Part shown: in pieces, positions 945 to 34,700 of the stretch | How the letters are laid out: every line of letters begins with the position of its first letter | Numbering within the stretch: position 1 is the first letter of the stretch | Source: Botryllus schlosseri | Taxonomy: Eukaryota | Reading direction: 5' to 3' | Assembly (NCBI GenBank): GCA_051294905.1 | Contig: CM119385.1 | Location: 21,204,001 to 21,268,000, forward strand | DNA: 64,000 nucleotides | The notes under the pieces: model-generated | What the model saw: the letters and a program-made list of their open reading frames with translations, nothing else | Told to the model about the DNA's origin: nothing | The model's database searches: none | Translations under genes and position numbers: made by a program

Positions 945-9360
<8,416 letters not shown>

Positions 9361-22771: not shown

Positions 22772-25700
22772 ATGTTTGGTTACGTTCCTGCGATCCTGAC
22801 CCTTATGGTCGTTCTTACTAGGGCTGATGAAGAAATTCAGTATGAAGACGATGTTATGGTTTTGACCGATAGCAACTTCGACTCAGCTGTTGAAAATAAC
22901 AAGTACCTGCTCGTTGAATTTTGTAAGTGTTAATTTTTTCTATAAAATTGTAGTTTTCAGCGTTCTGCCTTGCTATCTCGAGAACTGTCATACATTGTCA
23001 TCAGACAGGAACGGTCATTGCTTTTGTTAGAGATGATCTTTCGTATATAATTAGTAATTTTACGGCGCTGCTTTTGCGAGTCCTGTGACGACTATAGTTG
23101 TCAACCACTAGTGTGGATAACTTTCAAGGTTTGAAGCGGAAAAACTGGAGTATTATTCCATATGTAATGTGCTAATGGAACTTGTATAGAATATAATTAT
23201 CCACAATAGTAGAGGCCGTGTCCATCAGTTGCAATGTAAATGTGTCATCCTTCGGTCGGATTTATGTTGGTCTGGATGTGATAATCACCCTTGCCTTAAT
23301 AACGCAGGGCTATTTTAATTTTTTATGATTGCTAGACGAATCTTAAGAGTTAGAAGCGTCTTTCAACCAAGCCTCGATTAATTTTTTACAATTTATTTAC
23401 AATGACTGTATTTGCATACTACATTTTTAAGACAAAATACATAGTGATTGATGTAACTGAAATTATACCAATTCTCTACGCACGACGTAGGTTTCATGAA
23501 GCTCAATGCATAGGCTACATTATTAGTCGAGGATGTATCCCAGCTCTTGAATCTTTGAAATTGACACCGTACTAATGATTTTTCAAACCCACGCATGTAC
23601 ATTGTACAGCTATAAACGCGTTGGCATGTGCAATGTTGCAATAACTTTTAGGTTAAGCCTTCGTACTGCTCGTTTGTTCTGCAACCTAATGCTGGAACTG
23701 TTATAGAGAAACCAGAATGTTAGGCACACCGAATTGTGTCATTTTGCAATGCCAAGAGTGGGCACACTTAATGATTAAGCCATATTGCCCTAACAAATCG
23801 TACACTTGCCCAGCTTTTTGATCGCTAATCTAATGATGATACCTGCAAAAAGTTTAGCAGATTTTGTGTTAATTAGGCATTAAACAATTGCTGGTATTCA
23901 GATATATAGAACTTCAATATACAATTGGCTAATAACTATTAGTTGCTGACGATTACCACTGAATGCCGAAAATATCGCGGTTCATTTTATTATGGATATC
24001 TTGATGTACATTGCTGTAGGGTTGTCCTGATAACTTTACACGATGGCACTGTGACTGAAAGTTTAGATTTATGTGCGAAAGTTACACCACTTATCTACGA
24101 TTAGAGACACTTAGGAGTACAGAACATCATAACACATTTGAATAAAATATTCATATTTATTCCCGAAGCTGGTCGGCTGACCCTTGTCAGGGGATATCGT
24201 CAGCAGTATTGCGAGAATTCGAATAACTATGTTCAACAACAATATATATCGCTAATTATGACGTCACACAGAAATATACGATTGTATTCATACCGTATCA
24301 TGTAATTGAACATCATCTCTGGGGCGTGCGAATGCGGCAAATTTTTTCAAGATATTTTGCACTTGTCAGTTACAAGTTGACACACGTGACATTCTCCAAT
24401 AGTTTTGGAAATGAAGTGATCATAATTTCTTATATTCGTTGAATTGTCATGGTCTATTACTGTTTTCTAGGTACCTTATGTTCAATTACCGGTAACCTAC
24501 TATAGTATAGGGGTTTGTCACATGGTTCTTATGCTGATTTCATTCGTAGGTGTTATGATATAAGCTTATCGCAAAGCTATTTTCTACTTCCATTGAGATA
24601 AATTGTAAAATGTAGAAGTAGGCCTAGAAGAAGAATTATTCCAAAAACATAGGCCTGTCCAATTTGGCATTGGCAACATTGACAAAATAGATGTACCGTC
24701 GTGACCCTTGTTTATGATATAGCCTATAGGCTACTTTCAGAACCGTTGTTATAACAAAGTATAGGGTGGCTGTAAATTCAGTTCCTGATTAGTCTCAGAA
24801 TTGATTTGAATCGTTAGTTCTATTGATGATTAGATGCCCCATGGTGCGGACACTGCAAAGCCTTGGCACCCGAGTATGCAAAGGCCGCAGGACAGCTTAA
24901 AGAAGATGGGTCGGAATCAAAGCTAGGCAAAGTTGACGCTACAGTGCAACAAAAACTGGCATCGAAATATAAAGTACAAGGATATCCAACCCTTAAATTT
25001 TTCAAGAACGGAGTCCCTCTTGAATACCAAGGTATGTGTTATCTTCTGAATAAACTAACATGATCCTTTCCACTATAGATTCGGATTGGTGTGAGCATTG
25101 TCCCGAACTGACAAAGGTACTTGTTGGCTTGGCTAAGCAATTCAAGAATGAAAATCATAATGTGACGATTGCCAAAATGAATGGCGGTATTCATAATGAA
25201 ACCGTGGAGAGAGTGAAGCTAGCCGGGTATCCCACTCTCCTGCTATTCCGAAAAGACAGAGTGTGGGAATTTATGGGCAAGAAATGTGTTCATACACTGT
25301 AGCGCAGTGCATGTTGGGAATTTCGAGTGTGAGAGGTCAAAGGATTACCTGGTGTTGATAGTTTGCAGTAGTGTACCCATGGTGTAAAATTGAATAGATT
25401 CTGTCTGATGTATTATGATCAGTTTATATTTTTCTATCGCTGATATTCTGGTTGCCGCATGCTGTGTGAGCTAGCATTGCCAACACCTATCAAACTAAGT
25501 GAGGGTTGTTGTGTTAAAAGTTATTCGTTTCGTACATCCAAACTTGTGCAGACTACTGGATTTTCAGAATGTGAAAGTAGGACTAGAACTACTGACTTTT
25601 CAAAACTCGCAACTAAAACTAGAACCAGCGACCTTTGAAAATCTGCAACTAAATAACTAAAACACTTTTAACGAGATTCAATTCTAAACCAACTTGAAAA

Positions 25701-28700: not shown

Positions 28701-31700
28701 TCAATACTATGTGGAGAGTGGAGCGTTCATTTGAACAGCTTTAGAACCATTACTGTGGTTGGACGTAAACGAGATCATTTCTTGTCCATGTACATTAGGG
28801 GTGTTCAAAAATGACTTTTTTTCTCAAATTGTACTGGCTACTTGATGAAATTGTTAGGTTACCAAATTTAAGCCTACACCCCCAATTTGGTTCAATTCCA
28901 GCGAGTAGCCGCATTGCTACAGGAGAAGAAAGTTTCTATTTATTATTTAAAAATAAATAAACAAAAATTTCAGTTCACCCCATGAAAGTGTTAGGTTGTC
29001 TATAGAAACGATGGTTGGAATTGAACATTCCAACCAGTGGAAGCGGAGTTATTGCCGTCGAAAAATTTGGATTATCAATAAAATAGTATTTACGGTGACC
29101 AATTCTTTAATTATTTGTTAGTTGTGCCCACCGTAAATACTATTTTATTCACATCCAAATTTTTCGACGGCAATAACTCCGCTCTCACTGGTTGGAATTG
29201 AGCCAAATTTGGTGAACATCGTTTCTATAGACAATTTAACCCTTTCATGGGGTGAACAGAAAATTTTGAAATTTTTGTCCATTCATTTTTATGTAATAAA
29301 TAAAAACTTTCTTCTCCTGTAGCAAGGCGGCTACTGGCTGGAATTGAACCAAATTTGGTGTGTAGGCTTAAATTAGGTTACCCAACAATTTTATCAAGTA
29401 GCCAGTAAAATTTGAGAAAAAAAGTCATTTTTCAACGCCCCTAATGCACATTTCCTAATTGTGAGCTACTCAATCGCAGGTCCTGTTCATTTACATCGAC
29501 GGCGACAACGCCGAGAACGAGCGGGTCATGGAATTCTTCGGGCTGACGGCCGCCGACTGCCCGGACTACAGGATCATAAAGATGGACGAGGACATGGCCA
29601 AGTACAAGCCGGAGACCAAGGCGCTAGACGCCGAGTCTGTGATCGACTTCACCGGGAAGGTTCTCGACGGGAAAGCGTCGGTGAGTGTTGGCTGTATGGC
29701 GACGGTTTTGATTTAAATTGAATTAGGATCAGAATGATAGCTACACTTTTTTTCTGAATTAGATTTAAATTAGAATTATGGCTACAGTTTTTTTTTCAAA
29801 TATAGAATTATAGCTGCGGTTTTCTTTTCAAAGTTAGATAACAATAAGAATTGTCACTAGTTTTTTTCGAAATCAGATTATAATTAGATTTATAGCTGCT
29901 GTTTTCCCGAAGTGGGTTAGCATTACTGAATTCGCAAAATCTTGGAAATTGAATTCAACTCCGAATTAGGAAGAGATACGACAAAATAATGTTGAATTTG
30001 TATCAAATCAGAGTTCGTTGTCCTAAACATGTACATCGAGCTTGGCTCGTTTCGTACTTTACAGTTCTGGAAAACCACAAATTAGATTGGACAGAACATA
30101 AAAATATCTCGCAAATTAGGATTAGAGATTGATTACCGACATTTTGCTCTGCGAAGGGTTATTGAGATTTTTTTTCAACTTTCCAGCGTCACTTGAACTC
30201 GGAAGACATTCCTGAGGATTGGAATAAGAACCCGGTTTGTGTGCTTGTCGGAAAGAACTTCAAAGAAGTCGCTTTTGATGCCAAGAAGAAAGTCTTTGTT
30301 GAATTTTGTAAGTAGAGTCAACCGGTTTTGTCCCGTTTCGTCGGTTGCCAGTGAACTCGGCCCATAATCCTAAACCCGGCGCTTCTTAACCTGTACTAAC
30401 CTAACCCGAATTTACAGAACAAAACCATTAAAACATGATTTTCACACAAAACGAAATGATGATGAATATTCACTGCAAATCAGTACGACTTGTGCTGTAT
30501 GAGTCAGATATGTATCTTGATCGCCAGCAAACCCAGTTGAGAACCACCGTCCTAACTCTAGCCCAAATACATGAATACAGCAGGGTTGTAATGACTCGAG
30601 TCACGATTTTCTGATGACTCTACTTGACTCGAGTCATTTTTTCAAAATACGGAAATGATTCAATCTGTGTATTGACTCGACTTGGACTCGAGTCATTGCG
30701 CATGACTCTATCCAAGTCATGCGACTCGAGACTCAGACGGCCAAGACCGACATTTCATTGTGATTTTGAAGGATAGTAAAGTAACCTCACTATTGGGATT
30801 TAGCCTATTGGCACTGGTACTTGAAAATGCGACCAGAAACTGCTAAAAGTGAGGAAAATGAGTATATTATAAATGCGAACCATTCGATACCACCAGAGTT
30901 ATGAAAATTGGGTTTTAACGAGACTTTTACTGGACACTGAGCAGTCGATACAATGACTTAGACTCGGACTCGAGTCAAAATACCATGTCTTGAACTCGAC
31001 CCTCTGCTCGGTGACTTGGACTCGGACTTGACTTGAGTCAAAACTATAAAAGTGAGATTGACTTGCGACTCGCAGCCGTGGCCCTTGGTTACCACCCTGT
31101 AATATGTTAAACATACCAAGTGCCATGTATCCAGTGAAACGTTCATTTGCAAGTCTATCAATACAATATTTATGCATCTCTTTCATAATAATAATAATTG
31201 TTACATTTCAAATGACAAATTCACAAAGTGCCGTCTATCACAATCCGCTCTCATATTCAGTGAAACATTGATTTATTAATACAATATAGATGCACCGTTT
31301 TCATCACAATAATAGTTATTACAATTCTAATGACAAATTCATGATCATATTCAGTGAAACATTCATTTTTATTAATACACATTGATGCATTGTCTTCATA
31401 AGGATAGTAGGCTAATTACATTCATATTGTCAAGTTCACTGGTAACTATTTCGCCGTCTGCGACTAAAACGTATCAATTCCGTGTCACAAAGCTAGGCAC
31501 AATTCTAGTGGTTCTTATTCACTTGAAATCTCACCCGGCTAATCCGCTTTAAATCTGTGGGCTTTATAAGATATGGCTTGGGTTAGTTATTGGTGTCTCC
31601 AGATGCTCCGTGGTGCGAACACAGCACGCGCTTAGCGCCGACATGGGAGGCTCTAGCTGGGAAAATGAAGGATAGGACGGATCTGGTTATCGCCAGAATA

Positions 31701-34700
31701 GACGGCTCGAAAAATGATGTGTCCGACGTTCACGTCGTCGCGTTCCCGACGCTGCTGTATTTTCCGAAGTCAAAAAAGCCAAAAGTGAGGGTGATGATCG
31801 TAGACCTTCAATCATCATGCCTGCTTACATCATGACCTCATTTATCGCCGGTAGTTGTTTTTGCGGTCGGGAGACATACGAGCATGCGACACTTAGCATG
31901 TGTGTTCAATTTTTTATTTGATTTGCTCTAAATCTGTTGGGCATGATTATAATCAAGGCATGAGGTTCTGAATCGCAAGTCATTGTTACTTTTTTGATCA
32001 AATTTTACTTGATTAAATTGTTCGGTTGCCTTGAAAAATGGTTCACACCAATTTTGGCTCAATTCCAACCTTTGGAAGTATTGCAGTATGAAAAAAGTTT
32101 TATTTTTTCAATAAAAATAAATATAAATTTTTTTTATATTTCACTGGTTTCCTCGTGAAATTGTTACGTTGTCTGAGCAAACGATGCACAACAAATTTGG
32201 CTCAATTCCAACCAGTAGAAGCGAAGTTATCGATGTTTAAAATTTAGGATTTCAAATCATAGTATTTGCGGCGCGTAGATCTATAATAAATAAAGAAATT
32301 TGCCACCATGAATATCATTTTTTTGAAATCCAAAATTTCGCACTCCGATAACTTGCTTTCTACTGGTTGGAATCGGGCCAAATTTGTTGCGCATTGTTTT
32401 TCGGAGAATCTAACAACTTCATGGGGTACCCAATAAAATATGGAAAAAAATTTGATCATTTTTATGAATCCAAAACCTTTTTCATATATAGCAATGATAA
32501 GTTGGAATTGAACCAAAAGTGAGGTCCAGCGTTTTTTTTTAGACAACTTGACAGCAATTTTTTCAAGTTTTATCGAGTCAATGTGCAATGACTGTAGTAG
32601 AAGCCTAGTTCATACACAAAGTGTCTAAAGTTGAGTCATTTTCCGTCCCTGGTGATCTGAAATCACCTGCGGTTAGGGTAGGGGTGAGAACATATATACG
32701 GGTTCAGAGTTACTGTTTGGGTTAGTTTTGGAGTTATAAAGTCACATGCTAAAATGCCGCGTGCTCTAATGTCGGGCGACCGTACTTAGCGACGTAGAAT
32801 AATACGAGCAGTGATTATTTGCGTCGGCCGTTGTCATGTAGTTGCCACGTTGTTGCTTTAGACGCGCCATGGTGCGGGCATTGCAAACAACTCGCCCCGA
32901 TCTGGGACAAGCTTGGAGAGCACTACAAGGACAACGACGATATCGTTATCGCCAAGATGGACTCTACCGCCAACGAGGTGGAAGAAGTCAAAGTGACTGG
33001 TTTCCCGACGTTGAAATATTTCCCCGGCGGTGAAGATAATGTAAGGAGAGAGTTGTTTGCATGCACGTGTTTTTCTTGCTAGATTGTAGCGCCGGAATGT
33101 GTATACTGTAGTCAGCATTGCTACTCGTGTAGAAGTGGGGCTGTAAATTTCTTGTCATTTACACTTGGAAATAGTAAATTGAGCAGCTTCTATACAATTG
33201 AATAGTATATTCATATTGAAATGAACACGAATATTTTCGGCTGACACTCGTGACGCTCGGTGAAAATCTCGAGATTGATGCGGAACAATCAAAGGACATA
33301 ACTTCTGCAGTTGGCAAACACTTGTTGGATAATCCAGCCTGTGTGAAAAATTATTGAGACCACAGATTTTTCGTCGTCGGAAGGGGGCCGCCACACTTTT
33401 ATTTGTGTGCCTTGGAGTCGACTTTTATCAAAATACACCAGCCAAGGCTGTGCCAACAAAAAGAGTTTGTGTACCACCTAAAAATAGTACATTGAACGCT
33501 CTCTCATTCGAAATTTCATGCTTGTGACGCCATATTTTGTGATACGATTGTTGATATACAATGTGCTTTCCAATTCTCTATACTAGTTGCTGACGATTAC
33601 CCCTGACGAGTGTCAGCCGAAAATATTTGGGTTCGTTTCAATCTGAGTATGCTATTCAATCAAATAGTAAATTCTAAGACATGTCCAAACTATTTGGAGT
33701 GTTGCTACTTGAGTAACGCCTTGAATTTCTGCTTAATGACAGACAGAAATAATAAATTCCAAGACCTGTCCGAACTGCTTTGATTGTTGGTGCTTGGGCA
33801 GAAGTAGAAGTAACGTCTTAAATTTCTATTTGATTACAAATAGAAAGTGATATTCGAGACTTAGCAAGCTCAGCGACAGGTGAAAATTACCCGGAGCAGT
33901 AGAAATAATGCACTTTTTCTTGACCATGACCGCCGACTCGTGTGCTTGTGAATTCTTGAAACTTTAATTTCATTTCTAATTTTTCCCAGGTAATTGATTA
34001 CAATGGCGAGAGGACGCTGGAAGCCATGATCAAGTTTATCGATTCTGACGGCAAAGAAGTAAGTGGCGAGGAAGAAGATGAAGACGTAGATGAGGTGTGT
34101 AGTGGTAGATGTGATATTTCGACTTCAACTAGGGTTGGACACAATGATACGGGTAAAATGGAGTGTTGATTGTAATGATGCAGATTGAGAAGTGAGAGAT
34201 TATCTCTTACAGTGCTGAAATTACAAGCTAATTGCTACTAAGAGTTCATTTATCAACTACATTTATAGTTCCGATACTATTTTCCACTGAAAGTCTTATA
34301 GACTATGATTGGTCGTATCGCAAATGGCATGTATGTGAAGCTAGTGACAAACCCACAACATTGTCGCAAAGTGTAATGAAATAAGGTATGGTCAGTAATA
34401 TACAAAATAATCTTTAATTTGATGTGGAATTGGCACTATATTCTCTGTGGTTGCGTAAATGGTACATTTTCAACTTTACACATCATTCGTGAGGTCATGA
34501 TTACTGGTACTGGAATACTGTTCATTGCGGTGCAGATGATTTGGAAAGTTGTGACGTGTACCTTGGATACACCACGTTGAAACTTTTCTGAACAATTTCG
34601 TTGTTGAGCGTGGGGCTTGGTCACGTCTTCACAGAATGCCACGTGTTTTGGATGGCGTGATCTGGCCAATTGAGATTTCAAGTTTTCAGTGATTGTCGAA

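Follow-up and report, generated by a model that had tools for sequence, protein, structure and literature searches.

We have analyzed a stretch of 64,000 nucleotides (nt) from the genome of Botryllus schlosseri (GenBank assembly GCA_051294905.1, contig CM119385.1, positions 21,204,001 to 21,268,000 of the forward strand), referred to here as the window and numbered from its first letter. It contains a gene for a protein disulfide isomerase (PDI) of the P4HB type in which the active site of the a' domain is encoded twice, by two neighboring exons, 9a and 9b. Our analysis indicates that these are probably tandem-duplicated, mutually exclusive exons, with 9b providing the default CGHC site and 9a giving a conserved monothiol isoform, to which we would assign an isomerase or holdase role and use in particular contexts. 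The gene lies on the + strand at ~22.77-36.3 kb of the window, begins with a signal peptide, has RDEL at the end of its last coding stretch and encodes an a-b-b'-a' architecture with the P4HB exon structure. The relevant features of the a' region are the following.

30187..30307, + strand: exon 8, constitutive, encoding the start of the a' domain and ending in ...VFVEF plus the T of a split Tyr codon; spliced 30307->32862 in three of the RNA data sets described below (X1, X4 and X22).
31603..31784, + strand: exon 9a, 182 nt, alternative a' active site, APWCEHS (monothiol), with acceptor ...tctccag/AT and donor AAA/gtgagg.
31623..31625, + strand: Ser codon AGC at the resolving-cysteine position of 9a, read from the sequence.
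32862..33040, + strand: exon 9b, 179 nt, canonical a' active site, APWCGHC, with acceptor ...ctttag/AC and donor AAT/gtaagg; the form used in all RNA examined.
32994..32996, + strand: TGA computed for the joint use of 9a and 9b, inside 9b.
33990..34095, + strand: exon 10, constitutive, encoding the end of a' with the arginine of GERT; junction 33040->33990, and reads leave at 34095.

Exons 8 and 10, on either side of the pair, encode the rest of the a' domain. Exon 9a is unique in the 495.5-Mb genome, its best other match being 9b (50% identity, E = 1.9e-13), and the likeness between the two is far beyond chance. The Pfam Thioredoxin model (PF00085) scores 9a at 36.9 bits, over a cut-off of 23.5, and residues 397-452 of the human PDI chain 4ekz, the a' active-site segment, align to it with E = 7.5e-12, the Ser standing opposite the second Cys of CGHC. 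A first-pass annotation of this DNA, made from the letters alone, had described 9a as lacking the resolving cysteine. This was confirmed: the motif is WCEHS, and with Ser (AGC, 31623-31625) in place of the resolving cysteine the exon departs from the canonical CxxC and encodes a non-canonical monothiol a' site. Sequencing error could be discarded as the origin of the Ser. Words sampled from 9a were found in 16 runs of one organism, four of which, from four studies, contained all of them (none on record as RNA), and one independent contig spans the exon without a difference.

The two exons have the same phases, both starting in phase 1 and ending in phase 0; the first two bases of each are the rest of the Tyr codon of which exon 8 supplies the T. 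When the exons were joined in silico, the combinations 8-9a-10 and 8-9b-10 were open, while 8-9a-9b met the TGA at 32994-32996 and 8-10 was out of frame. The annotation had proposed that splicing 9a to 9b runs into a TGA inside 9b, and that the two are homologous alternative a' exons kept from joint use by the reading frame; the first proposal was reproduced by recomputing the joint, and the second holds in all five lineages found to have the pair. This exclusion arises because the duplicated exon has an asymmetric phase, and a selected design is not required for it.

The other lineages came from the contigs behind 11 of 308 9b-like open reading frames (ORFs) obtained in a protein search described below, which were fetched (two of the 11 without DNA) and then searched with the exon peptides of the window. 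In four of these lineages, given here under our own handles, a 9a-type exon lies between exon 8 and a 9b-type exon.

Window: motif WCEHS; 9a 182 nt, 9b 179 nt, spacer 1077 nt; codon AGC.
L013/L014: motif WCEHS; 9a 182 nt, 9b 182 nt, spacer 274 nt; codon AGC.
L015: motif WCIHS; 9a 176 nt, 9b 185 nt, spacer 171 nt; codon TCT.
L019: motif WCVYS; 9a 182 nt, 9b 182 nt, spacer 128 nt; codon AGT.
L020/L021/L022: motif WCKFC; 9a 185 nt, 9b 179 nt, spacer 90 nt; codon TGT (Cys).

In all five carriers both exons are bordered by AG/GT and have lengths equal to 2 modulo 3, and all four orthologous 9a-type exons pass the Pfam Thioredoxin cut-off. The annotation had also suggested looking at whether the Ser is conserved in orthologous exons, and here the answer is divided: it is kept in four of the five lineages, so that it is not a private variant, and the remaining one (L020) has Cys, in CKFC.

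Both exons are conserved as coding sequence in the other lineages. Between the five carriers the synonymous differences (pS) are saturated, at 0.71-0.95, and the introns cannot be aligned, 9a and 9b being the only alignable islands, whose ends differ from the exon borders by no more than a few bases. For 9a the amino-acid identity between carriers is 42-62% and the nonsynonymous difference (pN) 0.23-0.39; for 9b the values are 75-88% and 0.06-0.20, an evolution of 9a that is 3-4 times faster than that of 9b. The Trp-Cys of the active site, which includes the attacking cysteine, and the cis-Pro loop F/Y-P-T are invariant in the five 9a-type exons, which also keep Pro and Trp in the helix that comes next and the V-I-A strand, besides signature residues of their own (P/S-T-W, I-D/N-G/A..N-D and PT-L/F-L-Y/L-FP-K/R-S). 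In a maximum-likelihood tree of the exon peptides they form one clade (support 94/94, found in 94% of bootstrap trees) nested among the exon-9 sequences, with the CKFC form sister to the four CxxS forms; the branch of the window's 9a is not lengthened (0.41 versus 0.33-1.35 for the others). Since the 9a-type exons make a single clade across the carriers, the duplication that gave rise to 9a and 9b predates their split, and the saturated synonymous divergence indicates that the carriers are anciently separated. The comparison indicates that 9a is an old exon kept by selection as protein-coding sequence, neither a private variant nor a decaying copy. The Ser appears to have arisen twice from Cys, by TGY->AGY and by TGT->TCT, as read by parsimony on five sequences with a margin of one step; two independent routes from Cys to Ser would suggest that the loss of the resolving cysteine was selected for.

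RNA data of B. schlosseri were mapped to positions 30100-34200, specifically two contig sets (X1 and X4) and two raw-read runs of bulk RNA-seq (X22 and X24). Sampling covered ~6% of each raw-read run, a joint was listed only with at least three reads, and there are 76 further joints beyond those listed. The 8-9b junction (30307->32862) is supported by 232 reads of X22 and by contigs of high depth from both X1 and X4, and the 9b-10 junction (33040->33990) has 318 reads in X22 and 18 in X24. Several observations weigh against our reading of 9a. There is no junction into or out of 9a among the joints listed in the four data sets. The mean depth of X22 is ~2.3 on 9a versus ~340 on 9b (~0.7%), the few reads at 9a falling on the exon and not on the adjoining unique intron, and X24 has zero depth on 9a. 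The X1 contig that includes 9a (31397-32086) is colinear with the genome and has a depth of 12, equal to the flanking intron, the spliced 8-9b contig having a depth of 2366, and the X4 contigs with 9a are likewise colinear with the genome. On the protein side, a collection of 5.8 billion proteins held no 9a-bearing fragment of 33-105 amino acids save one genomic ORF; the same search with 9b returned the 308 fragments mentioned above, so the method works, and as these were mostly genomic ORFs the blank for 9a says little about mRNA. Six lineages (L016, L017, L018, L023, L024/L025 and L026) are without a 9a-type exon, exon 8 being followed by a single exon 9, and the Ser, as the CKFC of the L020 lineage indicates, is not universal. 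On the same side, the biochemical consequence of a monothiol a' site is something that we only infer.

Two further protein comparisons gave little that was specific to 9a. A profile of three 9a-type exons matched only the ORF of L015 itself, and HMMER with 9a against 1.84 billion representatives gave 2850 matches, none above 46% identity, with multi-domain PDIs ranked at the top and none of them 9a-specific; isoforms would hide within the 50% clusters. In the 8-9 introns of the six non-carrier lineages (55-1039 nt) there were no 9a-type remnants. From the RNA, 9b is the default exon and any putative use of 9a amounts to at most ~1% in the samples examined.

These data could be read in other ways. 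One is that 9a is a poison or regulatory exon, spliced jointly or in competition with 9b, so that the message is lost to nonsense-mediated decay and the output of PDI is tuned with no role for a 9a protein. Joint inclusion does put a TGA in 9b, upstream of further junctions, and the joints listed include no productive junction of 9a. They do not include a 9a-9b junction either, in any of X1, X4, X22 and X24, and a poison exon has no need of a reading frame; 9a has nonetheless retained an open one, together with its length class and the residues critical to the thioredoxin fold, despite the saturation of its synonymous sites. We consider this explanation improbable. A second possibility is that 9a is a dead duplicate, a pseudo-exon that in this genome merely retains the appearance of an exon. 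The lack of spliced 9a RNA among the joints listed in the four runs and the faster evolution of 9a, 3-4 times that of 9b, would be expected of such a relic. The orthologous exon, though, has stayed intact in five lineages despite the randomization of their introns and synonymous sites, with frame, length class and splice sites kept in every carrier, and the only variant listed within it is synonymous (31718 T>C) against five substitutions and two indels in the flanks. The comparison across lineages contradicts the dead duplicate, to which we give hardly any credit.

The same gene has a second pair of alternative exons in the a domain, and the annotation had suggested that the two pairs use different exclusion logic.

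24834..25031, + strand: exon 2a, 198 nt, encoding the active site of the a domain, WCGHC, with orthologues in both L015 and L020.
25079..25276, + strand: exon 2b, 198 nt, encoding an alternative active site of the a domain, WCEHC, located 47 nt past 2a and having a GC donor.

All 2a and 2b exons have lengths divisible by three (198/198 nt in the window, 195/195 nt in L015, 198/204 nt in L020), so the frame cannot keep these two exons apart. The spacer between them is short in the three lineages, 47 nt in the window, 41 nt in L015 (pair at 5198-5628) and 40 nt in L020 (pair at 2598-3039), and the GC donor of 2b (G/GCAAG) is kept in all three; the motif of 2b is CEHC in the window, WCMHC in L015 and WCVHC in L020. 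By comparison, the spacer between 9a and 9b varies from 90 to 1077 nt over the five carriers. The suggestion that the exclusion rules differ is supported by these figures, and the coordinates bear out another remark of the annotation, that the non-canonical exon is the upstream one in 9a/9b and the downstream one in 2a/2b. Other mechanisms of exclusion were considered for 9a/9b. Steric exclusion was rejected because of the spacers of 90-1077 nt, and incompatibility of U12 and U2 introns because every donor is of the GT[AG]AG or GTATG type; a weaker polypyrimidine tract of 9a was dropped, the share of pyrimidines ahead of both acceptors being similar by eye. Where both regions were covered (the window, L015 and L020/21) 2b and 9a occur together, and both are absent from L016 and L017, a pattern that consists of five data points only.

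As to what the monothiol isoform might do, we propose the following for the pair 9a/9b as mutually exclusive exons. Each of them encodes an a' active-site cassette, which runs from the CxxC/S motif through the next helix and strand to the cis-Pro loop. Use of 9b gives the ordinary CGHC enzyme as the default, and splicing of 9a, presumably confined to particular cells, stages or conditions, would give an isoform that keeps the attacking cysteine and has serine in place of the resolving one. Such a site, having no internal disulfide, would not pass on oxidizing equivalents. It could still attack the disulfides of clients and form mixed disulfides, which would be freed only by a thiol of the client, glutathione or another cysteine. 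In mammals a' is the domain mainly recharged by Ero1, and the 9a isoform would not be rechargeable at a'. The outcome would be an enzyme working in isomerase or holdase mode, like yeast Eug1p or the CGHS mutants of PDI, and 9a may be used jointly with exon 2b. The middle residues of the motif vary freely among the carriers (EH, IH, VY, KF), which would fit a site whose redox potential no longer matters.

There is prior evidence for this kind of chemistry. A CXXS site forms no internal disulfide and carries no oxidizing equivalents, being suited to shuffling, and Eug1p, both of whose sites are CXXS, depends on the presence of CXXC homologues to rescue a pdi1 deletion (PMC2195995). CXXS mutants catalyze isomerization and neither oxidation nor reduction, and PDI members with CXXS bind their clients longer and have been described as holdases (PMC12384036). 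The annotation had gone further, to a narrower reading of the 9a isoform as a protein dedicated to trapping substrates or to thiol retention, in the manner of ERp44 and AGR2, with long-lived mixed disulfides. The retention of CxxS in four of the five lineages, the prolonged binding of clients described for CXXS holdase PDIs (PMC12384036) and the free variation at the two positions between Cys and Ser (EH, IH, VY), as though no constraint acted on redox potential, are all consistent with it. Nevertheless one lineage keeps CKFC in the same type of exon, a full a-b-b'-a' PDI with an intact CxHC in its a domain could resolve the mixed disulfides, Eug1p and CGHS-PDI shuffle disulfides and do not merely hold clients (PMC2195995), and the other defining parts of ERp44 are all absent. 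We rate the trap lower than the isomerase or holdase role because the a domain stays dithiol, because a CxxC is found in one 9a-type exon and because Eug1p-like enzymes turn over; as a dedicated function it seems to us unlikely, although conceivable. What has been published on CXXS PDIs (Eug1p and the CGHS mutants) is as compatible with an isomerase devoid of oxidase activity as with a retention factor like ERp44. A tentative extension, for which we would claim only a limited likelihood, is that one gene makes two enzymes, the switch to 2b plus 9a turning a CGHC...CGHC oxidase-isomerase into a CxHC...CxxS enzyme whose a' domain is off the disulfide relay.

Some additional observations concern variation within the species and the surroundings of the two exons. 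The synonymous 31718 T>C is the sole variant listed within 9a, the five substitutions and two indels lying in flanks of ~500 nt. A 9-nt insertion, GGTGTCGCC, was found at 31591, just 5' of the 9a acceptor, in contigs of X1 and X4, and X4 has besides a 2-nt deletion at 31571 (31569-31571); the indels at 31569-31591 fall where the branch point and pyrimidines of 9a should lie. At three sites of 9b (32998 T>A, 33001 T>A and 33025 C>T, third-codon and synonymous) all four runs differ from the assembly, and the assembled individual carries a 9b haplotype other than that of the RNA samples. A stretch of ~37 nt of the intron directly after 9b aligns between the window (33050-33066) and L019 (512-528) and includes TGCATG, and two more GCATG are located at 31882-31886 and 31896-31900, ~100-115 nt downstream of 9a in the window. 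We take TGCATG to be a motif of the Rbfox type, and these copies near 9a and 9b may be a lead, found post hoc, for tissue-specific control. The introns 8, 9a-9b and 9b-10 reach summed contig depths of up to ~50,000 at 30511-31195, 32155-32291 and 33114-33661, with many internal joints and strand switches; these stretches are dispersed repeats abundant in the RNA data. Between 32040 and 32440 there are direct and inverted copies of a ~40-nt unit, resembling a small foldback element. In the compared lineages, the equivalents of exons 7 and 8 are a single exon in L015 (6850-7157) and exons 9 and 10 are apparently fused in L017, which indicates that the intron set of the PDI gene varies between them.

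The chemistry of PDI active sites is thought to diversify via gene duplication, as in ERp44, AGR2, PDILT and Eug1p. Here one P4HB-type gene contains this kind of change, from dithiol to monothiol, in the form of a choice between exons, and the arrangement has persisted over very deep divergences. The 9a isoform, if produced, provides a natural experiment on a PDI whose a' site can neither be oxidized nor resolve mixed disulfides. If in addition the gene does make two enzymes, it would be an ancient counterpart, at the level of exons, of what gene duplication produced in yeast (Eug1p) and vertebrates (PDILT). With its two exon pairs the gene also sets two exclusion rules against each other, one with asymmetric phase and a free spacer (90-1077 nt), the other with symmetric phase, a conserved spacer of 40-47 nt and a GC donor.

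Tandem exons that are mutually exclusive and separated by frame and nonsense-mediated decay are a known general class. Exons 9a and 9b share with it that they are homologous neighbors with the same phase and with lengths indivisible by three, which means that using or skipping both shifts the frame. A search of the literature outside subscription journals found no paper on alternative active-site exons in any PDI, and we know of no frame-separated exon pair described for a PDI active site, nor of one that toggles between CxxC and CxxS. Mutually exclusive tandem exons and CxxS PDIs are each known.

Among vertebrate PDIs, PDILT is a testis-specific paralogue with degenerate, non-canonical sites and restricted expression. 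It is an a-b-b'-a' relative, and its solved structure is one of those matched by 9a (5xf7, E = 3.3e-5), but it originated from the duplication of a whole gene, whereas 9a comes from the duplication of an exon with probably exclusive splicing. Among the representatives of the protein library searched, a natural CxxS is found in multi-domain PDIs, in P0240 (CGHC + CGHS), in P0163 and P0238 (WCEHS) and also in P0182 and P0219, with motifs that include WCPYS and WCGHS; several of these proteins end in KEDL/KEEL-like signals, and the group might be of use for comparison with other monothiol PDI sites. P0240, P0163 and P0238 have the same active-site letters in a multi-domain PDI, but they are separate proteins, at most 46% identical to 9a, with no indication of an origin by alternative exons. 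ERp44 (CRFS), AGR2 (CPHS), AGR3 and TMX5 have in common with 9a the CxxS motif and the mixed-disulfide chemistry (PMC12384036), but they are separate genes with other domain architectures, 9a being part of the a' domain of a P4HB-type a-b-b'-a' protein. The regulated C-terminal tail of ERp44 (a-b-b' plus tail) and the single domain of AGR2 have no counterpart in this gene, so the 9a isoform may work as ERp44 and AGR2 do while standing outside their families by architecture. Eug1p and CGHS-PDI are, like the 9a isoform, full-length enzymes of the PDI type with a site that has the attacking cysteine only, which shuffles but cannot oxidize (PMC2195995). The second site of Eug1p, as read from the naming of its CLHC-CIHC mutant, is CIHS (PMC2195995), the same letters as in the 9a-type exon of L015. 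Eug1p, however, is a separate gene in which both sites are monothiol, whereas in the PDI gene of B. schlosseri the choice of exon would switch one site and the a domain stays dithiol, with CGHC or CEHC.

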